Shown here: one piece after another, positions 404-62,801 of the stretch
Position numbering within the stretch: the first letter of the stretch is position 1
Layout of the letters: each line of letters begins with the position of its first letter
Source of the DNA: Phallusia mammillata
Taxonomy: Eukaryota
DNA length: 64,000 bases
Assembly: GCA_965637545.1 (NCBI GenBank)
Contig: OZ281498.1
Coordinates: 12,710,001-12,774,000, forward strand
Reading direction: 5' to 3'
Notes under the pieces: model-generated
What the model saw: only the letters and a program-made list of their open reading frames with translations
What the model was told of the DNA's origin: nothing
Database searches by the model: none
Made by a program: the position numbers and the translations under genes

Positions 404-3400
404 GTGACATCACTTAACGGCGTGACGTCAGAATCCAGCACCGCACCAGCTTACCAGAGCATCGAGTTCGCAACCAGTGAAGCAGGTATTTTATGGAAAT
501 TTTGATTTGTTTTGGAACAAAACTATTGTCTCCGTCCTTGGCTTAGTATGTCTGTTTATAGACTTTTCGGCAAAATTGTACCTTTAATCACCAACAATTT
601 TATAAATAATAGTATAACACCATGTTATCAACACAAAGCACATTCGTGTCCGTTTATTTTTGTCAGCCAATTTCAATTTTACAATACACGATCAATTAAC
701 ATAAAATTCGCTATCTTTAGTTCCTTCTGTGGTGAACAACCTCGTTTTGGTGGCAAGTGGTAAAACTAGCCTTACCATACAATGGGCCCCTCCCACTAAA
801 CCCAACGGACTCATCTTAGACTACGAAGTTCAGGCTGCCCCTGTTGAGAAATCGGGTGAAATTTCTGCTCCTATAAAGAAGCAGGTAAGCACGTGACAAT
901 CTTGTGACAATCTCTCAATTGAATCACGTCTTAATTGATCACCATAACTGAATGTGTTAGACTTTGACCTTATGTTGACTTTTTGAACTTTTCAGATTGC
1001 GTCACATAACGTTACTATTGAAGGATTGGCAAGTGGTGAGACGTATGTGGTCAAAATTCGAGCGCGTACTTCCGCTGGTTTTGGCCAGTTCAGTCAACCT
1101 CTCTCTTATACAACGCTTGAGGGTGAGTACACAGAAGTCTATGGTAGAAATTATGAAACCGCTACGCCGGTACAGCACCGACTTGATCCGACGTTAATGC
1201 GCACAGTCGTGAGTGGAAAGTACGCAGTATCCGAAAAACATCTGCATTGCGCTTTAAAGCTTAAGACTGTTTTAAGACAAAAGCTCAGTGGTTTGTGACA
1301 CATTAAAAAGGCGAAACATTCTACAAATTTGTGTTTAATACTGAGCTATCTCATCTCTTTATTTTAATTATTATAAAACCTATTAAATGTAACTTTTCGC
1401 TATATGTTTGTGCAGAAGCCGGAACTGGGAAGACGATTGTTTCTGAAGGAAGCAGCACAATTCTAATCATCATTATTGTAGCAGCCGTCGCCCTTATTGC
1501 CATAGCAGCAGTGCTATGTATTATGCGAAGACGAAAACTTCGCCTTCTCAAAGAAGCTGATATCCGCGCACGTTCCAAGCTACCTGACAACGAACAACTT
1601 ATCGTTAGAGATGAATTCTCGAGCAGCATGGGTGGTCAGTACATTTTAATTTCGTTTTGATCCCTTGGTGTTTGATACCAATACATGACACCTAGGCGCG
1701 TTTTCAGGGATTAATTTTATCCGATTTTTAGGTCGAAATGCGCGCAAGACATATGTGGATTACAGAGACCCACACAAAGGAGTGAAAGAAATCGCCCGTG
1801 AGATCGAAGTGTCTAAGATAAAGATCGACCGTGTGATTGGACGAGGTATGTGCACGTGACCTCATGCGGACGCAGCCATTTTGTTTCAAGCTCATTGTGT
1901 GCCGTTTGCTTAACGAAGAATGGCATTGGTTAATAAGTTACAACACGACCTCTTTAAAAGTTGAAGCCATTTTGTTTGAGGCCATGATGGCTCTGTTATG
2001 ATCTACGCTTTTGAATAGCACACACAAGAAAATGACTCTTATAGTAAAAATCAACGTTTCAGTTTACTTAATGGATACATTAACAGGTGAATTCGGTGAG
2101 GTATGCAAAGGCAAATTAGTGGAAGGACGAACTTCAGTTCCTGTTGCTGTCAAACGCCTGAAACACGGCGCAAGTCTCATCGACCAAACCAACTTTCTGC
2201 GTGAAGCTTGCACCATGGCTCAGTTCGAAGATTCCAATATTGTACAGTTACAAGGTGTTGTAACAAAAAGTGAGTTTAACCTGTGTATTATTTGTTCTGT
2301 TACGACATTCAAACAATCCATTTCTCGCTTATTTGCATGTTAGGATTTCCCTTTAATGGCCTCATGGGTGTTTTCTATTCGCCATAAATCAGTTCCGCGT
2401 GGGAGTGAGAGTCGTATAAACTTTAAATAACATGAATGGGAACTTAAACTATGGCCTAATATGCGCTTTGTGTTTACCTAATATGTACGTTATAATATGC
2501 TCTAAATTTGGTGGTTGAGAAATTTTAAAAGGACACCGAGAAAAATCCCATCTGACAGCAAGATGTAACTGCCAAATTTCGCATCAGGTTTCGGTGTCAA
2601 CTTTTTTGCGAGATGGCGTGCGCGTGTAATGTGGACCAGATAAAACTGACAGTTTTTCGAGCATATTAAGGCGATAAACTTGTCCGTAAATCAACACCTC
2701 CCCTATATCCATGCGTGCAATTTATTGTAGAGATATGTTAACAGACATAGGCATAATATGCTGACGCGCAATTTAAACATGACAGCATTGCACTTTTACC
2801 GCGACTTCCAAACCTCCTCATTCTGAATTTCCACTTAATATGAAAACTTTTGATTTTTGTAGGCGTTCCAGCCATGATCCTCACCGAATTTATGGACAAT
2901 GGTTCTCTCGACAAATTTCTGCAGGTACCATATGTCGCAATTATATGTAGTTGATCGATCCGTCATAAAACGTGTTAGCTTTGTGGTTCCATAAGAATGT
3001 GTACGTTTCGCAATACTGAACCAATTCTTTTGTTACTTCAGCGTATGCGGGGAGAATTGTCGATGGTTCAGCTGCTTCAGATGTTGAAAGGCATCGCAAG
3101 TGGAATGAGATATCTCTCCAGCATGAAATACGTCCATCGTGATTTAGCAGCCAGGAACATTCTCGTCAACTCGGATCTCGGCTGCAAAGTCTCTGATTTC
3201 GGTCTTTCCAGAACGTTGGAAAACGACCCACATGCCACGTACACGACACAGGTTGGGAAAATTACTTGTACTTGTTGGAATGCAATGACAACCGAACTGT
3301 TAACGATTGGACTCTTTCCTGTGTTTTGTTAATATGAAACAAAGGCACATTCGTTCTACTATTCCAGAATTATTCTAGAAAGTTAAACAATTGATTGAAA

Positions 3401-6400
3401 ATGTTAAGAATCTGTCTTAATGTTTATTCTTTATTCTAGTTTCATGTAAGATTCTTTTCGACGTTTAGACGAGCATTGGAGTCCTTTCAATACTAAATAT
3501 TTTAAAACAAACTGGCCTCTCGACTATTGTTTCCTTTTCGCTCAAGTCAAACCAAGAATGGTATTTGATGTTAATTCCAAACGTGCCTCCCTAAGCCTCG
3601 TTAACCCGTGAGTCAATTCAAACAATTCTTTGTTGTCACCGCAGGGAGGAAAAATCGCTTTGCGCTGGACTGCGCCGGAGTGCATTCGATATCGTCAGTT
3701 CACCTCGTTAAGCGACGTATGGAGTTTTGGCATCGTCATGTGGGAGGTGATGTCATACGGCGAAAAGCCTTACTGGGACATGAGCAATGATGACGTCACC
3801 GAGGTGATTGAGGACGGATACAGACTGCCAGCACCTTCGGTGAGTTCAGGCTTTCAAGCATTCACTGGATATGTTGTAAAACTAGCTATGTTCTAGTACT
3901 GGGTGTCGTAGGTTAAGAACTGGACACTCTGCCTCTTTTGTGCGGCATTTCGGACACGTAACCCATAGGATCGCGTAATTTGACACCAGAGTTTCTATTT
4001 CATGCGTGTCCTTCGGCTACGGCAGCGGATCTTCCCCACCCAGGATATATGTGCGGGTTGTGTCAGTTGGCTTTCAGCAAAACCAGGAATTTTAGCAATC
4101 CCTAGCTTTTCGTGTCATGTTTTTGCCTCACCACGACACGAGTATTGTTCAACCGTCGGCGCCTGATCGACTGTCTCGAGATTTAATCCGTCGCAGTCCA
4201 GCGCTCATGTGGCTTTCACACTCAACGCACAAATTAAGATAATGGTTCCATTCTATCCACTTTAATTTACGCACCGTGCTTGTAAAGGGTCTGAATCAGA
4301 AAGGGGTTTCCGACGATTGAGATCCTTGTCTGAACGATCCCTCTGTCGCACTCCCAGCTGAGCATTCTTTGTAATTTTGCTTAACTCAATCCCACGAGCT
4401 GCAGGAACAGGGAAAACCCTGTCATCGAAACGTTTTCTATTATGTAAACCAAAAGACGTAACCCTTAGCAGCCTTTAAGATCCTTTGCAAATCAGTGACC
4501 GCAAAGGTATTGGTTGATGAAATTATTTCATAGGTGGGCGTTAAGTCGTGATTTCCTATTGAACGGGCGCTGAATTTTGACTCAAACTTGCATTAGCTGT
4601 TGGCAACAGACGTGGCATTGTCCGTTCGTATTCGTGCGCAAATGTGGCGACCTCCGGGCGTCTGCGTGTCCCACCTCAGATCTATGGCTATTGTCGCCCC
4701 GTCACGTTGCTTCAGTTGCGAGGCTTATGAAAATATTTTGGTTGCGACTGGAGCGTCAATTTGATTTGTTAACATAAGGCCAGTAGTTCACCACCGCCGA
4801 CGCAACAAGCTTTCTAATTCGATCATAACGGCATATTTGTGTTCATTCCAGACTTCACTGTTTCGAACTTTTATACCAGGCAAGGTAAAAAAACACTTCA
4901 GTTACTGTTAGAATCGTTAATAAAATGTTTATAAATCACATTACTCCTAAACATTGTCCCTAAAATCCATTTTTTGCGTTTGGTATTTCAAAACTTGGCC
5001 TAATACGACGACTTGCTATTGATCCGCTTTGCTGTGGATGACCTTTTGTGCTTTCGAATCCGCTTCCGAGTGTTAGCGGCTGCTTAGAACATCGGAGCTT
5101 GTTTATTGAAACATCGCGTATGCGGTCGCTTATCTTATTGACGCTGCGCCGCCTAGAGTTGTCGTATAGTGCAGCATAGCACCTTCAACGATGCGCACAT
5201 CTAACCAGTGTTGCAAATTTGCTGCTTGAAATCGTTTTGACCTGCTTAATATCGGGAGTCGGGACAATGTTGACACATCGGTCGTGAACACGTTCCCATG
5301 GCTGGATTAGACACAACAGAATGTTGTTCGCTAGCTAACCGCTACATTGAAGCGCCGCCCGCCTAAATCACAAGGCGGCGTTTTGCTTTACTCGTCGCGT
5401 ATGATATGCCTTTCCCAGCAAGTGCTCATTTCATTATCGGCAAGGTGTTAAAGATTCTAGGCACCCCGCCTATTTTCGATGAATTTCGGGTTGAACGAAA
5501 GAACAGATGTAATCCCGTTAAGTGGTAGGACGGTGCCACTGGGCGTGGGCGGCTTATTTTTATCGTTCGTTTTGTCTCGCTTTTAGCGGTTACAAGCGAC
5601 TGGTAAGTATGCCGAGGTGCATCTAATCACCGGTTTTGCTTGTGACCCCGTGCGCCGGCCGCAAAATCACCACCCTGCCTTGAGTGCATTCCCTGATTAA
5701 GGCGGCTGTTGAGCGATCGGCGTTTAACCGCCCGGAAATGGCGCTCTTCATTCCCGCCTCATCTCTGCACTTCCAGTCAGGGAAAGGCGGTAGTTTAGGT
5801 GCTCGAGCAGAAATCGATTTGACAAAATATTCGGCAATTTGTAACGTGTAAATTTCGCACGCTAAGTTTCGATGTTCCATCGCCGTGCCTGTGTAATGAC
5901 CCGCCCTCCTCACTAACTCCCACCATTTGCTCTCATCAGCACAATTTGCGGCAGCCGATGCGTGTGCTAACAAGTGATTAGTAAATCTTGGCCACCGCGA
6001 GGCGTTTTAAGCGAATTTTGATTTTGTGGGGATAATTTTGCATTCGCGTTCGAAGATGCGATATCGCCTATGACGAGCGCACTTCACTAACCAACAATTG
6101 CCAAACGTTCCTCGGCAAATTTGTTGGCAATCCTTGTTTCCGCTTGTTACAAAGTAGCGTTATTTTTTTAAACCAGAGGAATCGAGCACACAAACTCTTT
6201 TGTTGTATTTTCTGTTTTCTACAACAACGTTTACGTTCATTTCACAATTTTTTTGAAACATCTGCGACCGAGTCACCTCAGTGGTGTTCGTGCTTGAGTT
6301 GCCACGTTCCCTATTTTCCGCTTGCCCGAGAATTGGCGCCAATCCCTTGCCTATAGTTTATGAGCCCAGCTTCACATAGTTACTTTAATAGACCGACGTG

Positions 6401-7873
6401 GAGGAAAAGGGCGTTGTGTCGGGATCCCTTGGAAGCGATTCACTTGAAAGGCAGTTTATGAATCGGTGAAATGCTCCATGCACAGTTAAACCTGTGTGTC
6501 AGGAAACTTTCCGTCCATACCCCCTTTCCTCTCCACCGAACCTAACCTTGTATTGTGTTTAATGTGGCTTAGTATTGGGACCCAGGCATGACCGCGGTCT
6601 GTACTAAACTTGATTGCGTTTCGCTGCATCCTGTTGCTTTTTGAGCCATTTTTCCCGTCTGGCAGTTTTCTTAGACAACTAGTTTTATAATCGACTCAAT
6701 CCAATTGATTATTTGGTTTAAAGCTCGCATTTTTAAACTTTAAATTATTTACGACATGTGTGCAGTGATCGTTTTATGCGCAGGGTTGCCCACAAGCTTT
6801 GCACAACCTCATGCTGCAGTGCTGGAGTTATGAGCCTCGTAGACGTCCATCTTTCAACGAAATCCTTGCCCAACTTGATGACTTTATTCGTCAACCATCT
6901 CTGCTTAACGACGATATGTCTGCGACCGATCAAAGGTATGCGCACTCAAATTCCCTTTGCAACAGTCTTTGGCACGACTTGCGTATTTCAAAGTTACTTA
7001 ACCATATGTCTTAAACGTCGCAATATCATGCGTTTATCGTTCAACTTAATACCGCTTATTATCTAAACAAAAAGAGTGAACCTCTTTATTGTTGAGTTTT
7101 TGTCCTTCGTAAAGGCATATCCGCCTATCAAAGGCGTTATTTATAGCGTGGTCGTTACAATTGTCCTGGCACATATGCGCACTTGTAACTAAAAGGGCCT
7201 GGCATAATAACAGTGATTAGTTGTATGTGTTAAGCAGGGGCAAATTTAACAAATTAGTCTTTTGTTTTTTCTTAGTGCGCCGCTTTTGAACCCGGACAGC
7301 CCAACCAGCCTACAGGAAGTGACCACACTGGAAGAATGGCTGGACATGGTCAAGCTTGGTCGTTACCGTCAGAGCTTCTACGCACATGGAATTGTTGACC
7401 TCGAAACACTTGCACATCTTTCTTCCAGGTAAATATGCGAATGATTAAAACGCCATCAGCGCCAATCGATCTGGTATTTACGAAAAATTGGAAACAGTAT
7501 TTTCAACAGTTGTTGGTATTTACAAAAAATGTTTAACCTTAATCGAAAAGTATTCGTGCTAAAGTATTTACCCTTAAAGTTTTTGTTACAAAGCTAACTG
7601 AAATTGACGTTTTTTAGTGACCTTGAACGATTCGGAATATCGTCATCAACTCATCTCAATCGACTGCAAGGTGGCCTCGATACACTCCGGCGCCACCTGA
7701 GCACTGGAAGCGCCGCTGAAGGCGGAATGGCGCCACACCTATCCAACACCATGCGCCCCTCCTCTGACGTCACTACTAACCCATCGGCGCGTCAAAGCTT
7801 CACCCTCCCTCCCCAACGACAGTCGCCACAGCGGGAGCCTGGATCACGTGATGTGTCTGTCGCCATCGTGTGA
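404..7873 (+). CDS. Eph: Eph receptor tyrosine kinase, paralogue 1 (5' part lies upstream of the window): end of FN3-1, FN3-2, TM, kinase, SAM, PDZ-binding-like tail
   Basis: Hand-spliced GT-AG exons with consistent phases: 404-485, 721-884, 996-1122, 1416-1634, 1732-1845, 2087-2269, 2863-2924, 3042-3251, 3645-3839, 6784-6935, 7276-7428, 7618-7873. Motifs: FN3 ([25 protein letters not shown]), TM ([26 protein letters not shown]), [68 protein letters not shown] ([12 protein letters not shown]), C-terminus VAIV-stop. Confidence 0.95.
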
Positions 7874-24100: not shown

Positions 24101-27100
24101 ACAGATCGAAGTTTGTAGTGTTTATCTTTTACCATAAGCCGGACACCATCCGATCTTCAGTGAACTTTACATTAGTTTTAACCGCCTGGAAGCGGATTTC
24201 CAACTCATTAAATTTAACCCCTTGCACCTTTTTAGCTTTAAATCGCAGCTGTGCTCTCAAAAAGTATTTTTTATGATATTGGCTTATGGGATAACGCCAG
24301 ACTGGATAATATATTTTACAACAGTTTGAGTATTGATCTTTGTGAAGGCATGTTTCATTTAATTAATCTTGTAGCATCGACGATTGGTCGAAAGCGATTC
24401 GGTGTAGTTTGTATATAAGCTACTTAATCTCTTACGCTTCGATTCGTTGACCACGAGCGTTCGAGATTTATCTCAAAATCACTTGTTATAAATAGCAATA
24501 TGACAGCGCGCTCACATCTCAGCGAGCTCGCGCCTACCGAAGACGACTTGTTTTTCGCGCAGAAACATTCCGCGGACGTGGTTTAAACCTCGTATGACGC
24601 AATGAACGAATTCCGGCATGCGCCCGATTGAACTAGTCAAACGCGTGCGCTGAGTTCCACCCTGGTTGTGACCGCGAGTTTGGGCTGCTTGAGGCAAAAT
24701 ACCACCGGCGCGATTATTTCATAATCCGTCTCCTGTCAAGTTTGATTCCCACAATATTGAATGTTGATCAAACGCGTTAATGCATCAGCGATCTGTTTTT
24801 GACCTTTTTCTTCGTATTTCCAGCTCCATCGCAAGTCCCAAACATTCAAATGACCGCTAGAGACGAAACGTCGGTGACAATCTCCTGGCCAAAACCAACC
24901 CGACCCAATGGCCTCATCTTGGCGTACGAAGTTGTCTCTCAAAGAAAACAAATTCTAAATGTTCATGCTTTGAAACAGCCTGATGCACCTTTTGTGCAAA
25001 CAGTAAGCAAAACTTTTACGAATCTTTTTTAATTTGTCAAAATAGTACGTTATTGTTGTGCGGCACCGAGTTGCATCCCCTCTGTTGGTTTACTTTCACC
25101 TCAGGTCGAAAAGTTGTGATGTTTTACACTCAAAAATTGGCTTGTATCTTTTTTCGAATACAGTATTTAGAACCGTACTTTAGAATTTTGTGCCTAAGAT
25201 TAACGTTGAATTTTCTAACACAACTCGCTGACAGTTAAGATGAACATAAATTCATAACGTGGATCAGCCCTAAAGCGTCGATGCAGACCAGCGATCACGG
25301 CACACTCATGTGTAAATCACATTACGCCATTAAAGGCGTCATACCGAATCAGCCGGTCACCAAGCATTCACCACCATATGGCACCATATGGCAAGGCCTG
25401 CGGTGGGATTCGAACCCACGACAAGTCGCTGACATAGCAAAAGGCCTGCTTGTGATTTATACTGACTTCATCTGTTTTTCGCAGACTACCGAGAATAAAC
25501 TTACCCTGACGTTGAAGTCCAACGTCGACTACAACGTGCGAGTTAGGGCAAAAACATCAGCAGGGTATGGCCCGTACAGCCCATGGACCACCGTCCACAC
25601 AGCCTCATCTACAAATACACCCTCTGAACCAGTTACTGGATCGAGCAACAACATGGTCATAATCATCGCGGCTGTATGCGCAATTCTTTTCATCGTTCTC
25701 GTTGCCTTTATTGTGATACGATATAGAAGCACGGGAAAGCTTCTCTGTCTCAACACCAGTCGGGTGCCGAAAAAGCAGCAGGACAAGAACGCATTGAAAA
25801 AGCTGGGAAATGACATGCTTCCAAGGGAGCCGTTGATAGGTATGTAACGACCTCCTTTATTGTTTGATGTTTAACTAGTGACGTCTCAAGTGTTTAAGAG
25901 AGGCACCTGTGCTTACTGGATTTCGCAATAGCAACCGCCCAGTTCTTAAATGTAGCTTGTGGCTCGATGGGTCTTGTATAAATGACTCTTCTCACAGTTG
26001 ATCTCCCACCGCCAGGCCAACGTCTCTACGTCGAGTACCCGGATCCACAGAAAGCCATATCTGAAATCGCTAAAGAATTCAACATCCGGGACATCGTAAC
26101 AGATGACGTCATCGGTGTCGGTAAGTGTCGATCAGGCTTTCTGTATCGAGTTTACAACAACAAGTGTATAGCGTGATTCACATTTCAGGTGAATTCGCTG
26201 AAGTTCTACGTGGTTCGTTGCGTGGCAACAGGTGTCCACAAGGCCAGGTTGTGGCGGTAAAACGACTGAAACCCGGTCACACCAAACGCGATCAGAGCAA
26301 CTTTTTGCGGGAAGCATCGACCATGGCCCAGTTTAAAGACCCAAACATTGTTCAGCTTCTAGGCGTGGTTACCAAAGGTTCGTTAAGCTCTTATTCTTGC
26401 ATCGGCTAATGCTAAAAATAACACGAAGTCTAATGTGGAAGTATATATTCTTACAGCTCCTCCAATTATGATCATCACTGAATACATGGAGAATAAGTCG
26501 CTGGACAAATACTTGGAGGTAAGTAATCGTGTTCGTGTTTATTTTGTTTCATATTTGGACAGTGATTCATGGGTAATCATTTATGTAATAAATTTGTGCA
26601 TGTGTAACAAGACCTGAATCGGCCATTTTGTTCTGTCACTAATAATGTAACGACATACTAAGCTATCTTGTTGTTAGTAATGATTTATTATGGGTCCCCT
26701 TCCCTGAAGGGGACACATATTGATTTTACTCGAATTGTTTTTGTTTGTTTTTGTTTTTTTTTGTTTTTTTTTGTTTTTTTTTCTTCCTTTTTTTCTTCCC
26801 AAAGTTTGTCCGACTCGTTTTTCTATCAAATGTTTGATGGGTTTGGCTGAAATTTACACAGATGGTAGATATAGTTATGTAGATGTGCATCCCACTTTGT
26901 TTTTGTTGATAACCCCAGTATTTACCCCGCTAGCCCCCTAAAATGCGTATTTTTTCCCGGAAGTTTGTCCGACTCATTTTTCCATCAAATGTTTGATGTG
27001 TTTGGCTGAAATTTACACAGATGGTAGATATAGTTATGTAGATGTGCATCCCACTTTGTTTTTGTTGATAACCCCAGTATTTACCCCGCTCGCCCCCTAA

Positions 27101-29590
27101 AATGGGTGTTTTTACCCAAAGTTTGTCCGACTCGTTTTTCCATCAAATGTTTGATGGATTTGGCTGAAATTTACACAGATGGTAGATATATTCATGTAGA
27201 TGTGCATCCCACTTTGTTTTTGTTGATAACCCCAGTATTTACCCCGCTAGCCCCCTAAAATGGGTGAGTTTTTAAACAGTGTTAGAATTGGCTGAAATTT
27301 GGATTTCTTGTATAGTATGCCATTTATAGGTGTCGATTGTTGTGTTTAACCCTGTAGTCCTACATTTACCCCACAAGCCCCTAAAGTGTAAAACGTATTT
27401 GTATGTTACTGGGCACCATAGACGAAAGATTTCTTTGGAGCAATAGTGTTACAAGGGCAAGTTGTATGTTGCTCGTTGGTGGGTTGCTTGGTGGTTGTTT
27501 TTGCGCCATGGCAGTTAGGGGCTTGTTAACAGCCCTATGACGTCAGAAACAGTAACGGTTGTTGCTCAAAACACCTCTAGTGGTCGAAATTTTAAACATT
27601 GGCGGATTGGGCTGAAATTTTGCAGTACTATTGATTGAGTCATTGTGGTTTTTATATATTTTTTAGTTTGTGTGTCGAACCGAATTAGTTGCCCTACTAG
27701 CCCCCTAAAATGGGTCAGTTTTTTAAAACATTAAATAGGACATACTTCAAACAATATCTGGGGTGAATCTAATTTTGTAGTTTGTATTCTACATAGTATT
27801 ATTATTTAAGCCCAGTGCCAGTCACTGTGTTTTACCTTACAACACCAGACTTTCTCATGGTTATCTCTTGAATTGCATTATTTTCAACTTTACATGTGTG
27901 GGGACCCATGAGTTTTTGCCTGCAGAAACGACTAAAGTTATAAAAGACGATGGCTAATATGGGACTCAATACAAAATAAGCATAGGAAATATATTTATGT
28001 TTTAAAATAGGTTATAGTGTATATGCAAGGGCAATATGTGCTAAGCCACCCTTCTAGTTTTTGTTTAATTTTGAAATGCTTTATTTTCAGGACAATAAAG
28101 GACAGTTGTCAATCATTCAACTTCTGACAATGCTTCGAGGCATCGCAAGTGGAATGAGATATCTCTCCAGCATTAAATACGTCCACCGTGATTTGGCAGC
28201 CAGGAATATTCTCGTCAACTCAGATCTCGTCTGCAAAGTCTCCGATTTCGGTCTTTCCAGGACTCTCGAAAACGACCCCCATGCCACGTACACGACACAG
28301 GTACCTTTTTGTGGTCCTTAGCAACCATGGAACTGTAGCAAACAATTTTTGATTCATTGATGTATCGGATCGGTGTTTAATTACAAAACAAAAGTGTGAC
28401 GCTTTTATGGCGTAAGTTGTAGGACGTGGCGCAACTAATAAGTGTAACATAAGCTGTTGTTGATCGCGGCCTAAAATCTTCATAATAGACTTTTCTAACG
28501 GCAGTCAACACGATTTTTTTTCACGCCAACTGTTTTAGCCCCTTAAAACCTTGTGTAACAAGTTTTATTGTATTAAACAACAAATCCAATTTTAGGGTGG
28601 AAAAATTGCTATCCGTTGGACGGCACCAGAGTGCATACATTACCGTGAATTTACGTCAGCCACGGACGTATGGAGTTTCGGTATTGTCATGTGGGAGGTG
28701 ATGTCATACGCGGAAAAACCTTACTGGGACATGAGCAACCAACAAGTACTGGAAAACATCAATAAGGGAATGAGACTTCCTGCCCCAACTGTAAGGACTA
28801 TTTCATAGTCAAATCCAAAATTCGTGTTTTCAAAACCATAGTTTTAAACACTTATGTTTGTTCACAGGGTTGTCCTAAAATTCTCCACGACCTTATGTTG
28901 GAGTGCTGGTCAGCAGAAGCTGCAAAACGACCCCCATTTGCAGATTTAGTTCGCAATCTCGACTACTTGCTTGAACATCCTGAAGAGCTAAGTGACGTAC
29001 CAGCAGGTACATCACAAAGGCCTGATTATTCCAGAATCAGGTGAGTTTTGAAACTAAAGCACTATCTGATACAACAATCCACATTTCATAATTTTATTTT
29101 TTGTAAGATACGTTCCAAAAGTCTAACAATTTATTTCTCTAAAGGGCTACACCGAATCTTGGCCGTGCAATGGACAGAGGTCAAGTCAATACAGTGGAAC
29201 AGTGGCTTGATTTCCAACGTTTAAGTGGATACAGCGATCAGTTTCGGGAACGCGGAATCGACAGCCTTGAAAAAGTTTCAAATTTGACAATCAAGTAAGT
29301 TGGCTTCATTGTTATGCCTCGTCTGTTGTTAGTGTTTTTTTTTATTTAACATGTACTGTTTGTTCAAATTTTGTTCAAAAGCATTAATATTTGTTCGTTG
29401 CAGCGACTTGAAAAGTCTCGGAATCAACGTCACAATTCACGTGGATAGACTTGAAGACGGAATAAGGACATTAAAGCGCCACATGAGCACGTGTGAAAGT
29501 ACTCCGTGCAATTCAGCCAGAACATCCAACGTGTCAGACGCAATAGCGGAGGAAACTGATCCCCTACGTATGGAAAGCGCCGCTGTATGA
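12133..29590 (+). CDS. Eph: Eph receptor tyrosine kinase, paralogue 2 (complete, about 1056 aa): signal peptide, ephrin-binding domain, Cys-rich region, 2x FN3, TM, kinase, SAM, tail ESAAV
   Basis: 19 coding exons: 12133-12199, 14167-14237, 15585-15703, 16002-16241, 16306-16493, 16711-16821, 20455-20655, 23299-23410, 23479-23717, 24824-25002, 25485-25839, 25998-26120, 26189-26377, 26457-26518, 28091-28300, 28596-28790, 28868-29040, 29145-29294, 29404-29590. Total 3171 nt, in frame. Signal peptide [20 protein letters not shown]; ligand-binding motifs [33 protein letters not shown]; intact HRD and DFG. The first exon is the least certain. Confidence 0.93.
25380..25450 (-). mobile_element. tRNA-derived SINE-like fragment (Pol III B-box) in an Eph2 intron
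   Basis: The minus strand reads GTCGTGGGTTCGAATCCCACC (B-box/T-arm like), flanked on the plus strand by a 9-bp direct repeat AAGGCCTGC. No cloverleaf could be formed and the boundaries are uncertain. Confidence 0.45.
26686..27915. mobile_element. Helentron/HINE (DINE-1/pearl-like) non-autonomous element with internal satellite array, copy 1
   Basis: The left end ATGGGTCCCC-TTCCCTGAAGGGG-ACACATATTG contains the hairpin CCCCTTC/GAAGGGG. It is followed by a T-rich tract and three 158-159-bp repeats. The right end CATGTGTGGGGACCCAT (27893-27909) is the inverted counterpart of the left end minus the hairpin insert. The same termini recur at 40202 and 42211. Family assignment is by structural analogy. 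Confidence 0.7.
26802..27265. repeat. Tandem repeat, 3 copies of a 158-159-bp unit
   Basis: The unit start AAGTTTGTCCGACTC recurs at 26802, 26961 and 27119, with near-identical units. Confidence 0.95.
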
Positions 29591-49500: not shown

Positions 49501-52500
49501 TACCATTCATAAAGAGTAAATGCCACGCCAGATTTTCATTAGGCAATTATAAGTTCGACATATTTTTCCATTGGCAGATCATTAAAGCAAGCCACCAAAC
49601 CTAAGCTGTCACTCTAGCGGGGCTAAAAGATCATGCGCAAAACACATTAAACAAAAACTTACTTATATCCAAACTCTTTCGATTTCGGCCACGCTTAAAT
49701 GCTCGCGAAAGAGATCCCGACAGATGTTGGACCAATTTCTTTTTTCTTGCGTAGGATGGACCAAGAGATCCTCCGTTCGAAATGGGATCAATCTGGACAT
49801 CTTCACTGGAGGAAGAGTGAGTTCCTCCTGGAACCTGACCGAAGCAATGACGTGGGGAGACAGGAGATGGAGTCGGGATGAGAAGAGGATCCTGACTGTG
49901 TGAGGATGTGTTCGGCTCCGTCCCTGCATCCAAGGGAACAGTTTTTTTTCAATTGTAGAAATACAGAAAAAAACTAAATTATGTTCGACGTATTATTGTA
50001 AAATATATTTGTGTTTGTCGTAAGCAACAAATCGCTTAAACGGGTCGGGGACATGGAATAATTTAATAAAAGAAAACGATCGGCAGCAAATTTGCTTTAC
50101 ACCAACGTTTGAAGTAGGCAAAATCAGCATGTGTTTCTGGGTCAATATTGCTTAATATTGGTTCAATATCGCTTAACACACAAACAGATTAAAGTCCACC
50201 ACCACCCATAGGCAGAACGCGTCGCATTTACAAGGGCCTCATATTGAAATTGCATATTCAAACTAGGAAGTATTTGCTCGGTTTGGATTTGCTTCCCTAT
50301 TGTTTGCTAAGTTTCGATAGCCACTTATCGAAATTTCTGTTTGCAGTTAAGCAATTAGCTTTTTATTAGTTTCGCCTGTAAACAGAACTTTCACACGCCC
50401 CCGTGCAAGCAATTAATGCTCGTTGAGACAAACGTACCTGGCAAGTTGATTGATTTATGATTGGTAAAGCTTTCTTCCACTGAGACATGCATTGAACGAC
50501 GTTTTGAACTTTGAACTTGAACAGCTGACTGCCGCACCTGGATTTCAAAGAGTATTGCTAACGTTTGCAGTTCTAATTTGGGATAACGTGTAAGCACCGT
50601 AACATTTTTTTTAAATGAGCAACAAAGCTGATTTAAAAAATAAATAGGCGATTATTAAGCTTACCGCCTGTAACTCAGATTCAAGTTCCTTTATCTTGCG
50701 TTCGTTACAAACGAGTTCGTTTCTCAGTGAACTGACGACCTCGGTAAGATCCTGATGACGTCGTGATATGTCGTTACGCTCACGTGACAAGCGACTTCGT
50801 TCGTCATCGCCTTCTTTCATAATGTCTTCGCTTTCCTATAATTCAAACAGTTTAATTTAAAAAAATCAAATACAGGGTTGTAAGATGTTAAATTCTCAAC
50901 AGCAATCGAGTTTTGTTAAAAAACAGATGATTTACTTTCATTTGTAGTTCAAACTCTCGGATAAAATCGCGCAGTTGTTCCTCTTTATCTTCTATTGTCT
51001 TCTGCATCTCATGGATCTGATTGAGAAGTTCAGTCTTGTCTTGTTTCAGACGTTGCCGCTCGCTTTGCAGAGCTATCACACAAAAAGACAGAACAATGAA
51101 AACCTTGTCAGCCTTTTGTGTTTGCCAAACACAATAAGAGTTTGCACACAAGTGCATTGTTGACCTCAATCTACCAAATTCGGGGACGATTATCCTGGGG
51201 CATACCAGCGCTTTTAGTCTGCACTGACCTGGTTGGTGGTCAAATTGCTGTTTAAATAACAACAGATCACTGGGAACAATGGCGATTTCAAGGTAATCTG
51301 ATTTACCTTGTAACGAGTCCTTGTTCCGGATTTCGCTGTTACTGATTTGTTGCTTTAGATTTGCGATCTCCTTCAGCAGCTGCCGATTGCTTGAGCTCAG
51401 TGCCTTGTTGTCTTCCATCACTTTGTTCATTTCCCTTGTTTCTGCGCAAAGTCAACCACCCTATTGTAAATTTTGCGCGGAACTAGGTCAAATCCTTTAA
51501 ATCCCGTGCTTGCGAATGAAACATATAGTTTGAAAGTATAACCTGGGTGTTTCCCTTAGTCGCCTTCCAATCGCTTTTACTGCAGGAACTGTGAGTTAAT
51601 CTGTGCGATTTCCGACGATTTAGTGCCAAGCTATATTTTTGTGCTTCAGTTTTATAAACAAAGAAAACTCCAGCGTAAACAACAGATTTTCTGCACCACT
51701 CGCCTACAAAACTATTTAATAGCCTCAACCATATAGTTGGTTTAGCGTTTATTGTGTTGTGGACTCAAAATGAGAAAAAGGTCTCCACAGGCCCACATGT
51801 TGCACTTTCGACATGGTCTTTCTTAAATGTCAACATCCCTGCTCTATCAATAAATCGATGCCTACGTGTTGCTTTGATCAAATATTGTTTTACCTTGGCA
51901 ATGGGCACAGACGTCTTTCACCATCGATAACTCGCGCAGTTTTTGGTTTGTCATGTTCAGCTCAACGCGGAGGGTGTTCACTTCGTGATTGGCAGATTGA
52001 ATTGTGCCGTCTATATGCGTTGCCAGACGTTTATTGTTATCGACCATCTTTTTAAATTTTGTCTGCAAATATTGGCAGAGTAATGTTAAGCCTGCCCTGT
52101 TAAGCACAAAGGCGAGAGCAAGGTGTGTTTTAACGATAATGAGAACACTCAACATGGTTAAAAACATTTTAAATTTAACCCTGTAAGTTTTTTTTATAGA
52201 TAATTTTATAGATACCTGTGCATCCATAAGAAGACCACGCATCAACGTCAGTGAGGCATGTAAAGCGTCACGTTGCTGTGGTAACAAAGCGCTGTGGTCG
52301 AGAACAGAGTTGGTAAGATCAGACACGTTCTTCCGGTTTGTACTGTTCAGCGATGAGCTGAATATGAACTGCAGAATCTGTTCACTTAATGAGTCCAAAG
52401 ACTGAAGTGCTGTAAGAAAAAAAAGAGGGGATTTCGCACATTGCGTTCGTTTTGCAACACCAAAACAATGAATGAATTTGTTCAAACGGCTGTCTGCAAT

Positions 52501-59367: not shown

Positions 59368-60410
59368 TTGGAACCATTAAACCAACAGCAAAGGCAAAGT
59401 AATTATCACTGTAGCCTAAAACAGCCTTTAAACATCAAAAGTGCCTTGGGGTAATGTTAAAAATGTTAACGAAACAGTGCAGTGCTGAACAGGGCAAGCA
59501 CTATATAGCTTACTTATTCAGCATTGTCAGTAGCAAATCTTTTAGATCAGACTTACCACAGTTTTATTATTGACTGCTTACAATTCTATTCAGACAAACC
59601 TGCTGGAATTGCCATGCTGATTCTGTCTAAGTTATACATCCTGAAAATGCAGCATAAAACTAAACTGTGCCTCTATTTAACACGATAGCATGTTCCTAAT
59701 TCAGTCGTTAAGTATTTTAGGTCTTGAGCTTTACCCTGCACACAATTCCACAGCACTTCTCATACAACTGACCAAAGCGCCGCTTATCAGCCCTTCCAGC
59801 AGCACGTTTAACACATCACGCCGCTTCAGACAATTGTCTTCCGCGCGCTCAGTTTGAGATGAATAATTGTTCGCCCCTGCCCTCTGCTGGAATTGTTTTA
59901 TTGCTTCAAATTCCCAGCGGGGTACAGCAACGCTCTCGATCTCATTAAATATTTGACGAAACCGTTTTATCGTTCACACAACAGCGACGAGTTTGTCGCA
60001 AAATTTACTCAATGTTATGAGTATTTTCAAAAAGAGATTTTTACATTAGAAAATATGTAACCGAAAAACTCTACCATTGAAATACTTCTACGGATCTTAT
60101 ATAACTTACTAATAATATGTTTCACAAAATTTCCTCGTTTTACTAAAAGTCATTTGAAACGTTTTTATGATTTCTTTAGGTGTCCACAACTTTTTATTTG
60201 GGGAATGAAAAGAAACCTAAAACTGGAAACACCCAACACAAGAAGTAGCATAACATAGCACCCATTGTTCATGCGCCATACCGAGGGGTTTTAATGTCTA
60301 GCTCAATTCACATTTTTCAGCTTTTGTGTTTTATCTTTTGTGTGAACTCGGTGTTGTGTCTTCTATCAAAGTAGCTAGTGATCCCGTATCTGGTTGTAAG
60401 CTTTTACGCA

Positions 60411-62801
60411 ATGTTAAATTTGGAGGCAGATGAACTGATGCAAAAAAGACAAATGAGCATATCGATTGGTAAAAACGCCAACATTATAGGCAGTCCAATT
60501 GGAACAAACGGTGATGTCACGATTACCAATAACCGTAAGTAGTTGTTTGTTTTTAAATTGTGCCCCTAATTGATAACCGAAGTTTTTGGTGGTACGAATC
60601 CACTTTTTTGTCCTTTTGAAAACAGTGCTTGCTTGGTCGGTGAGTGCTGTGTGTTTCATAGCCCCTGTAGTTCTGGTCGTTGGGCAGTGAAACACTAGGT
60701 TATCGGTGTCTTGCACAGTGTCCTCACAACTGGGACAGAAAGGCTGGAAAATGTCCCCTTTATGTAGTTTAGGTGCAGTAAGACATGCAGTATATGATCG
60801 TATGCGATTCGCTACAACCCATTCATTTCGGGTTGGATTTGAAATTACATCCCCATCTCTTTAGGATGCCTTTTCACTAGTACTTGTTCCAATCTTCTTT
60901 TAGGTGTAAACGGCAATGTCTGTCGTTTTGTATATTGACTGCAACCATTAAACATTGTTTGCTAGCTGACGGACTAAACTTATTAAAAATCAAACACCAC
61001 CATCCAAATATAGATTTTCAGAATGTAGGTAAAATATTTTTTCAATGCAGCACAACATTTTGCTTTGCTGCGATATATCATCTCACAGTATGGCGCAAGT
61101 CTTATTAAAAGTAACTTGTGATTGGAAATTCACTAGTGTCAGGTTGTAGTGTTTGCATTGTTACAGAAGTACAATGAATCAAACCAACACCTTAATTATC
61201 GCCAATTACTGGCAATTTTTTTCAGATTATTTTGTCATTCAGTTTGCGATTTTATTATATTGGAACCAACTGTTTATTGTATTTTCAGCACTCAAAGTGT
61301 AGCTTAAGGTTCTTGGCAATAGGAACAACTATTCCGCACTATCAAACGGGATATTATTTTCTTGCATTTATGAATTGTTTAGATAATGGATCTCCACATC
61401 AGCCAAATATTCTGAGAGTCCCTATTCCTTATCCACAACGATCACAGATAGTTAGTCCAACATCTGATGACAGCAGTGACAGATCTTTATCGGATGTAAG
61501 CTCTGCATCTGATGATATATCTTTTACGTCTTTTCCCAAAGTGATGTTAAGTTACAATTGGAACTCTTCTTCAACTGTAAACAAGGTACAAAATATATTA
61601 TTATTCAGTTTTGACCACAGTGATATCTGTAGTGTTTTATATTTTACTCAAGTTCTGGTCTCCGAATGGAGTCGTGGGTTCGAATCCCACTTCTGACACG
61701 ATGTAGTGTTTTATTGCCAGGAGCCAAAAGCACAACCGCACAGCACGCGCGCGTAACTAGAGTGACCTCCGAGGTAGTCGAGAGGTACAAGAAAGACTAC
61801 GTAGTATAAAACCACTCAAGCGTATAAATACGTTGTAAATTCACTACAACATCTATTTTGTATCTTTTATTTTTATCGCTCACTAAAACCCCCTAATTAG
61901 TTGACACTATTGTTTAACAATAGCCTACACTTCTATCGCTTAACATCGAGCACATCCTAAAAATCCGCAATGATTTGGTCACATTTTGTGACTCATAAAC
62001 AACATATATATGTACAGATTTGTTTGATCAGTTTGTTTCACATCTTTTTTTGGCGTCAAACAGATTTACAAGAACTTGAGACGAGCAGGGTTTCAAGTTT
62101 GGTTGGATAAAAAAGATATGGAAGGTGATATGTACGAAAGTATGGAGAAAGCAGTAAGACAGTCCGACGTGGTTATTGCGTGTCTATCAGGGGATTATGA
62201 AAACAGTGCGAACGCCATGAAAGAAGCCAAACACGCTGCGGTGAAAAATAAACACATCATACCTATTCTTGTGGAGGAAAACTATCGTCCGAGCGGAGCT
62301 GTCGGTAAAATATGTTTTCAGTAGAGCGTTGAAGTTTAGTAACTTATTAAAACTTATTACATCGGTTATGGAGTATGTTAACTGCCATGTACTGTACTCT
62401 ACAACAAAACCGCAACTTGGTACGCATAAATTTTTTATAAAAACCATGGCGAGATTATCGTTTTATAGTGATATGTTTTTTTTTCTTTTCTAAACAGTAA
62501 AACATATATAACACAACAAAAGGTTTGACGGTTACGAAAGACCGCTTTTTTAACTATCTCAAAATCAAATGTAAACACCAGTTTCACTAGCAAGATCATT
62601 TACTACTAAATTACAACTTTAATTTTTACAGATTTTATTATATCTGGGACGATCTACATAGATTTTTGTTCGGGATCGTTTGATCGACAGATGAAGGCAC
62701 TTAAGACTCGACTTTCAATGTTAAAACCACGTCAAGTTGTCAATCGGTCAAAACCAAGCCAAACAAAACCTATGAAATCTTCAGTTTGCGTTGTTTTGTA
62801 A
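60411..62801 (+). CDS. TIR-domain (TIR_2-type) protein, about 245 aa, with an N-terminal Ile/Gly/Asn-rich pseudo-repeat and a C-terminal CaaX box (CVVL)
   Basis: Exons 60411-60534, 61383-61585, 62064-62304 and 62632-62801 total 738 nt, in frame, all GT-AG. TIR strings: VMLSYNW, GFQVWLD, MYESMEKAVRQSDVVIACLS, SANAMKEAKHA, IIPILVEENYRP, IYIDF. Exons 2-4 are well supported. Exon 1 rests on its ATG, a strong GTAAGT donor and matching phase. A 63-nt cassette exon at 60966-61028 is possible. Confidence 0.85.
60560..60850 (-). mobile_element. Degenerate 3' fragment of a non-LTR retrotransposon ORF2 in TIR-gene intron 1
   Basis: The minus frame reads PTRNEWVVANRIRSYTACLTAPKLHKG...PFCPSCEDTVQDTDNLVFHCP...KKW, resembling the W-x2-LNRLR...C-x2-C...H-x4-CP zinc-knuckle C-terminus of LINE ORF2 proteins. 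The His is replaced by Asn and there is an upstream stop. Confidence 0.6.
61628..61848 (-). mobile_element. Miniature LTR-retrotransposon derivative: 147-bp LTR, extended tRNA-Leu PBS and 13-bp LTR end
   Basis: 61702-61848 has TGTAGTG...CACTACA inverted ends and, on the minus strand, AATAAA just before the 3' end. It is followed on the minus strand by TCGTGTCAGAAGTGGGAT..., one mismatch from the Gypsy-type Leu PBS TGGTGTCAGAAGTGGGAT. A 13-bp repeat of the LTR end lies at 61628-61640. The flanks ATATC / ACATC look like a 5-bp TSD with one mismatch. Confidence 0.75.
61646..61698 (+). pseudogene. 5'-truncated, intronless copy of tRNA-Leu(CAA), part of the LTR element and not a functional tRNA gene
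   Basis: ACTCAAGTTCTGGTCTCCGAATGGAGTCGTGGGTTCGAATCCCACTTCTGACA matches the anticodon loop to 3' end of metazoan tRNA-Leu(CAA). The D-arm, A-box and 5' acceptor strand are absent. Confidence 0.85.

Follow-up and report, generated by a model that had tools for sequence, protein, structure and literature searches.

We have analyzed a stretch of 64,000 nucleotides (nt) from the genome of Phallusia mammillata (NCBI GenBank assembly GCA_965637545.1, contig OZ281498.1, positions 12,710,001 to 12,774,000 of the forward strand), called here the window, which contains a gene for a small protein with a TIR domain. The gene occupies positions 60411-62801 of the window on the + strand and consists of four exons with canonical GT/AG borders and compatible phases. 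Its coding sequence of 738 nt encodes a protein of 245 amino acids (aa) that begins with an Ile/Gly/Asn-rich segment (residues 15-41, MSISIGKNANIIGSPIGTNGDVTITNN), continues with a long Pro/Ser/Asp-rich linker of low-complexity composition (residues 42-92) and the TIR domain (residues 93-222), and ends with a basic Ser-rich tail and the CaaX box CVVL, directly followed by the stop codon TAA (62799-62801). All these elements had been described in an initial annotation of the locus and are present where it had placed them. The analysis of homologues has led to the conclusion that such a CaaX box is a conserved, apparently undescribed trait of many invertebrate TIR_2 proteins.

Gene structure and domain content

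The Pfam scan was run on the four exon pieces separately. TIR_2 (PF13676) was matched by exon 3 alone (E 7.3e-17, 62.4 bits vs a cut-off of 28), and no other domain was matched by it, nor any by the other three pieces. Neither has a transmembrane-like stretch been found in the 245-aa protein, the maximum 19-residue Kyte-Doolittle mean being 1.19. The initial annotation, which had named a TIR_2-type domain and had denied the protein an LRR, TM, death, ARM or SAM domain, has thus been borne out on both counts. The final 30 residues comprise seven Lys or Arg and no Asp or Glu. In the whole 64-kb window tblastn searches with 160 homologues have detected one TIR only, and no paralogue, second TIR or Death exon has been found there.

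The borders between exons 2 and 3 and between exons 3 and 4 have been examined by aligning the window TIR with 15 TIR domains from homologues (A2). From the last part of exon 2 through the whole of exon 3 to the first part of exon 4, the sequence keeps the register of these domains, and both junctions are confirmed by the absence of gaps at these points. The structure of exons 2-4 is therefore established by homology. The features of the locus are collected in Table 1.

Table 1 Features of the TIR gene (window coordinates)
Feature	Coordinates	Strand	Remarks
Possible 5' untranslated region	60320..60410	+	Preceded by a T-rich CAG acceptor-like site; putative, from sequence alone; could be a trans-splice acceptor or a portion of a longer first exon
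Exon 1	60411..60534	+	ATG and 41 codons plus one base, phase 1; perfect GTAAGT donor
Ile/Gly/Asn motif	60453..60533	+	Residues 15-41, on exon 1; three I-G dipeptides, tetrad I-S-I-G
Exon 2	61383..61585	+	Linker residues 42-92, then the first TIR strand from 61535 (PKVMLSYNW...)
Exon 3	62064..62304	+	TIR_2 core with the Pfam match; invariant Glu163 at 62223-62225
Exon 4, first part	62632..62729	+	Last TIR strand and helix (FIISGTIYIDF...); in register with homologues
Basic Ser-rich tail	62730..62786	+	Residues 223-241, including Lys238 (-8) and Ser239 (-7) of the conserved tail motif
CaaX box CVVL (Cys242) and TAA stop	62787..62801	+	Cys at -4, aliphatic a1 and a2, X = L
Polyadenylation signal AATAAA	62853..62858	+	Begins 52 nt past the stop

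Conservation of the C-terminal CaaX tail

A phmmer search with exon 3 against 1.84 billion representative sequences gave 2048 matches at E <= 0.001. The closest identity was about 48% in this search (41% over the trimmed TIR alignment), with no near copy among the matches, and a word-index protein search with the open frame of exon 2 and with exon 3 gave zero matches. Tail statistics were taken on the best 150 of the 2048 phmmer matches. Cys occupies position -4, counted from the C-terminus, in 31 of these 150 nearest TIR homologues (binomial P 1.5e-25 for a Cys background of 1.5%), as against 2-11 of the 150 at the positions neighbouring -4.

The 31 homologues share the tail K-S-[K/R/S]-[S/T]-C-a-a-[L/F]. 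Besides the Cys at -4 (31/31), it shows Lys at -8 (18/31), Ser at -7 (30/31), Lys, Ser or Arg at -6 (27/31), Ser or Thr at -5 (20/31), Leu, Ile or Val at a2 (30/31) and Leu at X (23/31). The tail of the window protein, K-S-S-V-C-V-V-L, matches this motif at seven of the eight positions and deviates at -5 alone. A profile search for shorter relatives provided 115 extra proteins, the named ones mostly from rotifers, and 29 of them end in K-S-R-S-C-V-L-F/L. X is thus mostly L in the set of 31 proteins and L or F in the second, mostly rotifer, set; CaaX boxes with Leu or Phe as X are of the geranylgeranyltransferase-I type.

The taxon look-up covered 20 of the 31 carriers. The named ones belong to molluscs (Mercenaria, Ylistrum, Bulinus, Lottia, Haliotis, Aplysia, Dreissena and Mizuhopecten), an annelid (Dimorphilus), a nemertean (Tubulanus), bdelloid rotifers, a crinoid (Antedon) and amphioxus, and all of them are annotated as uncharacterised. 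Most carriers are proteins of 700-1500 aa in which a Death domain is followed by two TIR_2 domains and the tail; in others a single TIR is preceded by ankyrin repeats or a helical N-domain. The window protein, with one TIR and no Death domain detected by Pfam, stands outside the Death-TIR-TIR-CaaX subfamily; the GGGD insert of the Death-TIR-TIR group is missing from its TIR, which looks closer to the single-TIR group.

In an evolutionary sense the predicted CaaX anchor is real, the tail motif being conserved across named members of several phyla. A keyword search covering about 8.4 million papers has revealed no description of a natural CaaX box on a TIR protein, and an earlier mention in the classification of the invertebrate ecTIR-DC families is possible. 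Each component has been known before, the TIR_2 proteins and the CaaX anchors as well as TIR adaptors guided by lipids; it is the conserved module K-S-x-x-CaaL/F on SARM1-like TIRs across Bilateria that appears undescribed. The proposal that a CaaX-anchored TIR protein would be new to the literature has accordingly stood up in the literature searched, with the addition that the tail is conserved, but the trait is not peculiar to the window gene: CaaX endings, sought among the homologues, have been found both in the nearest (31/150) and in the further ones (29/115), that is in a wide invertebrate TIR_2 family of usually much larger proteins.

Several relatives deserve mention in their own right. 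The proteins P0166-P0196 and their relatives (bdelloid rotifers where named) are a greatly expanded set of single-TIR proteins (about 160-430 aa), almost all with the ending K-S-R-S-C-V-L-F/L, and have a helical N-domain that has no Pfam match. P0074/P0157 (469 aa, from Logan) combine ankyrin repeats, TIR_2 and a coiled coil and end in G-C-C-L-L-L, a CaaX box with a second Cys before it, resembling the RalB- or RhoB-type tails, which are also palmitoylated. P0028 (1834 aa), with a 5'-nucleotidase C-terminal domain, an ANF-receptor ligand-binding region, a protein kinase and two TIR_2 domains, an unusual architecture, is a receptor-kinase-like protein with TIR output. In the contigs of the two nearest single-TIR matches (L001 and L002) neither the motif exon nor the CaaX exon has been found; in L002, which carries the TIR homologue P0076, a gag/protease retrotransposon gene (PEG10_N-capsid, RVP_2; 1-2297, - strand) adjoins the TIR gene.

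Type of the TIR domain

An alignment (A1) of 21 TIR domains contains ten invariant residues, and all ten, including Glu163, are retained in the window TIR. In profile alignments Glu163 pairs with the Glu of the SARM1 motif HKEIVTA, which we take to be the catalytic E642, and with the corresponding Glu of Cat1. When the A1 profile was searched against PDB, it matched Cat1 (E 8.5e-11) and SARM1 (E 6e-7) and, further, C. elegans TIR-1, plant RPS4, bacterial PdTIR, AbTIR and TIR-APAZ and two SEFIR-type chains; no MyD88, MAL, TRAM, TRIF or TLR chain was matched. On account of these profile matches and of the pairing of Glu163 with the Glu residues of SARM1 and Cat1, the window TIR is by its sequence of the type that cleaves nicotinamide adenine dinucleotide (NAD+). 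On this point, the presence of a catalytic-type Glu, the initial annotation is supported.

Proposed mode of action

We consider it likely that the gene is genuine and that its product is a small TIR_2 protein of the cytosol, of the NAD-cleaving type and with a predicted geranylgeranyl anchor, a stripped-down member of an old group of CaaX-tailed invertebrate proteins. Cys242 of CVVL would be geranylgeranylated after translation, which would bring the protein to the cytosolic face of a membrane, and the lipid tail together with the basic patch would concentrate it there in two dimensions. The basic Ser-rich tail would strengthen, and possibly regulate, membrane binding: the conserved Ser beside the basic patch may serve as a phospho-switch by which the protein leaves the membrane, as in the tails of K-Ras4B, Rap1 and RhoA. 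The TIR domains would be switched on by a signal that gathers them, acting through the N-terminal region or a partner; the gathering might be the work of the N-terminal peptide, of Death-domain relatives or of something else. Once assembled, the TIRs would consume NAD+ or produce a nucleotide signal. SARM1-type activity brought about by TIR assembly is an established principle. Lipidation, the identity of the membrane, enzymatic activity, the phospho-switch and the role of exon 1 are all parts of the scheme that we infer.

Several observations weigh against this proposal. The window protein itself, or a relative of more than about 48% identity, has been found in neither of two protein collections. 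The Cys of the family motif N-C-x-x-E is replaced by Ala in the window TIR; the conserved Glu is present also in non-enzymatic TIRs, for which reason it does not establish NADase activity. In a tree of 210 TIR domains (141 columns) the window sequence has a long branch (0.81) and falls within no supported clade, so that its tail, though it may descend from the CaaX family, is not proven to do so and may be convergent. Expression has been sought in sequencing runs: exon 1, searched alone, is in none of the presumed RNA runs, which are tiny. Of the words sampled from the locus, 7-8% are present in two small ones, a share close to the size of a repeat in intron 2 and therefore no proof of expression, as these words could equally derive from that repeat.

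The repeat in question is a tRNA-like or repeat element at 61623-61853 (including 61665-61701), which may explain the locus words in the two presumed RNA runs. Exon 1 is held by two runs of undefined kind, both probably DNA since they also cover about 60% of the whole locus, introns included.

If the TIR were not enzymatic, the protein could be a membrane sorting adaptor, in which the lipid tail would act like the myristate of TRAM or the binding of phosphatidylinositol 4,5-bisphosphate (PIP2) by MAL, and the TIR would only bridge other TIR proteins, either receptors or the Death-TIR-TIR relatives, without cleaving NAD+. Lipid-guided TIR adaptors are established in vertebrates, many of the tail-sharing relatives have Death beside their TIRs in a MyD88-like adaptor layout, and the conserved Cys before the Glu has been lost from the window protein. 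Nevertheless, the profile points to SARM1, Cat1 and prokaryote-like chains, apart from the two of SEFIR type, and to none of the Toll-like receptors or their adaptors, and the catalytic-type Glu is invariant in 21 of the 21 aligned domains. We regard a purely adaptor role as somewhat unlikely.

The first exon

Exon 1 is the weak point of the gene model and is proposed on the basis of its ATG, its GTAAGT donor, the phase match and a rare composition. The start codon at 60411 lies 11 codons downstream of an in-frame stop, the stretch from 60301 up to it is free of ATG, and the phase of the donor is exactly the one needed by exon 2. A 100-aa open reading frame on the antisense strand over exon 1 has no Pfam match.

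The messenger RNA may instead leave out exon 1. An alternative in-frame ATG lies at 61370, 13 nt 5' of the acceptor of exon 2, whose frame is open from 61232; after transcription from a nearer start or after trans-splicing, translation from this codon (MNCLDNGSPHQ...) would give a protein of about 208 aa composed of linker, TIR and CaaX box, with no Ile/Gly/Asn motif. This would agree with the lack of homology and RNA support for exon 1, and an open frame of 55 codons is not rare at 40% GC. Against it are the perfect donor of exon 1 in the required phase and its first ATG, standing after an in-frame stop and behind a good acceptor-like site. The composition of exon 1 is far from that of random frames in the window, and position -3 of the ATG at 61370 is a T. 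The shorter product seems rather doubtful to us, and the preferred model keeps the four exons of Table 1.

The N-terminal motif

The fraction of Ile, Val, Gly and Asn in residues 15-41 is 0.59, a value equalled by one other open segment among 32,229 windows in six frames of the 64 kb. A loose tetrad [IV]x[IVLC]G is expected 0.045 times per 41 residues of this sequence, and one is present; this I-S-I-G of loose RHIM shape is suggestive but weak. The core tetrad of RHIM is (V/I)-Q-(V/I/L/C)-G (PMC13506858), and I-S-I-G departs from the RHIM (PF12721) core in lacking its defining Gln. With exon 1 no Pfam family, RHIM included, was listed even at E 10, under filters that remove most matches weaker than about E 0.1; a search of PDB chains at E <= 10 gave no match either. 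A feature search with exon 1 in Atlas returned only sub-threshold bacterial and viral matches (best 0.76), which have been disregarded. Many RHIM proteins have been found in amphioxus, and tunicates appear to be without RHIMs (Kajava et al., PMC4262963).

The initial annotation had read the N-terminus as an amyloid-like motif. This part of it has fared badly, given the lack of Pfam and PDB matches, of the Gln in the tetrad and of RNA support for exon 1, and given the homologues, which keep one of the two terminal motifs that it had singled out (the C-terminal CaaX, in the numbers given above) but not the other, a motif-like sequence having been found in 0 of the 280 homologues fetched.

In the hypothetical scheme of amyloid-templated clustering, a receptor with a matching tag, for example an NLR-like protein of the NB-ARC-TPR type, would template a fibril and cluster the membrane TIRs, with NAD+ loss or death as the outcome, as in the fungal NWD2/HET-S and bacterial BASS pairs. 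The composition of the motif, rare in the window, its location on an exon of its own and the long low-complexity linker after it would suit such a tag. There are precedents too: bacterial amyloid-motif pairs include TIR2 effectors with NB-ARC-TPR receptors (bioRxiv 10.1101/2020.01.06.895854), and amphioxus RHIMs stand where NLRs usually have death-fold domains (PMC4262963). On the other side are the failed matches and the motif-free homologues just described, the missing Gln, the absence of exon 1 from the presumed RNA runs and the usually C-terminal position of known effector-side tags. A second copy of the Ile/Gly/Asn motif has not been found in the window, nor has an NLR-like open reading frame been seen there (no NB-ARC or NACHT match in the six scanned open reading frames of at least 150 aa, with a non-exhaustive scan for exons). 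We judge the scheme improbable. Its more specific form, in which the exon 1 peptide would be the effector-side copy of Asn/Gly-rich tags on candidate NB-ARC-TPR NLR-like receptors of the same genome and the TIR gene their partner, we judge decidedly improbable; if true, it would mean amyloid templating from an NLR to an effector in an animal, outside the RHIM family, with a predicted geranylgeranyl-anchored NADase-type TIR as the output.

That CVVL is a chance ending, or the locus an unexpressed pseudogene, is scarcely credible: the absence of exon 1 from the presumed RNA runs and of a close orthologue from the two protein collections would fit, but the tail follows a motif conserved in several phyla at 7/8 positions, all exons are intact with canonical splice sites and ten of the ten A1-invariant residues are kept.

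Neighbouring sequences

Two exon sets for tyrosine/Ser-Thr kinase domains lie on the + strand at 3024-6933 and 26185-28969 (tblastn E down to 1e-16) and are probably two paralogous kinase genes. The matches at 3-7 kb and 26-29 kb were produced by the kinase domains of the kinase+TIR fusion homologues P0012 and P0028 and have been set aside as unrelated to the TIR gene. A 179-aa open frame with a SAM domain (SAM_1, E 5e-11) at 44807-45346 on the - strand belongs, as an exon, to a neighbouring gene that is unrelated. Upstream of the TIR gene, the nearest sequence that looks coding lies at 50888-52485 on the - strand and consists of two long open frames (180 and 207 aa) with weak coiled-coil-type Pfam matches only (Rab11-FIP3-like, E 2e-4); the region of 55.3-60.3 kb appears non-coding.

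Significance and comparison with known systems

TIR proteins act by being gathered at the right place, and the placement cues known so far are transmembrane receptors, myristate (TRAM), phosphoinositide binding (MAL) and a mitochondrial signal (SARM1). The present analysis adds a conserved C-terminal module, made of a basic patch, a Ser and CaaL/F, on SARM1-like TIR_2 proteins whose named carriers range from rotifers to amphioxus. The module points to a prenyl anchor, possibly regulated by phosphorylation, as a means of bringing TIR enzymes or adaptors to membranes. As the smallest form seen (one TIR and the tail), the window gene offers a handy test object. Should its N-terminal tag prove to match tags of NLR-like receptors of the same genome, the gene would in addition be the missing effector of a possible amyloid signalling system in a chordate relative.

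The closest counterparts are the CaaX-tailed invertebrate TIR_2 proteins, for example those of Branchiostoma floridae (XP_002608409, P0041), Antedon (XP_071965604, P0055), Lottia (XP_009043817, P0098) and Adineta (A0A815MXG5, P0066). They have the same invariant TIR residues, the Glu included, and the same basic Ser-rich tail with a CaaX box and Ser at -7. Theirs are mostly proteins of 400-1500 aa with Death and two TIRs, ankyrin repeats or a helical N-domain. The window protein differs in its single TIR, the lack of a Death domain, its much shorter tail and an N-terminus unique to it.

The NAD+ hydrolases SARM1 and C. elegans TIR-1 share with the window protein the TIR_2-type domain, and the Glu of HKEIVTA in SARM1 aligns with Glu163. 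SARM1 is built as ARM-SAM-SAM-TIR, regulated by its ARM domain, oligomerised by the SAM domains and targeted by an N-terminal sequence; the window protein has neither ARM nor SAM nor N-terminal targeting and carries a C-terminal CaaX box instead. TRAM (myristoylated) and MAL/TIRAP (PIP2-binding) are likewise small TIR proteins placed on membranes by a lipid cue, but their cue is N-terminal, their TIR is of the TLR-adaptor type, missed in PDB by the profile of the window family, and they are not known to carry a CaaX box.

In TRIF/TICAM-1 and the amphioxus RHIM proteins a TIR is accompanied by a short interaction motif of amyloid type (PMC13506858, PMC4262963). The Ile/Gly/Asn motif of the window protein is N-terminal, not C-terminal, and differs from RHIM in the Gln tetrad and the Pfam profile. 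The effectors of bacterial BASS and fungal amyloid pairs, which include TIR2, are partnered by NB-ARC-TPR receptors tagged at the N-terminus (bioRxiv 10.1101/2020.01.06.895854). In these pairs adjacent genes share the motif and the effector tag is C-terminal, in contrast to the window, where no adjacent partner has been seen among the open frames scanned. At its other end the protein recalls the hypervariable tails of K-Ras4B, Rap1 and RhoA, in which a polybasic stretch, a regulatory Ser and a CaaX box are likewise combined. In CaaX tails of this kind X = L directs geranylgeranylation. As these proteins are small GTPases and not TIR proteins, the likeness is one of function and not of homology.

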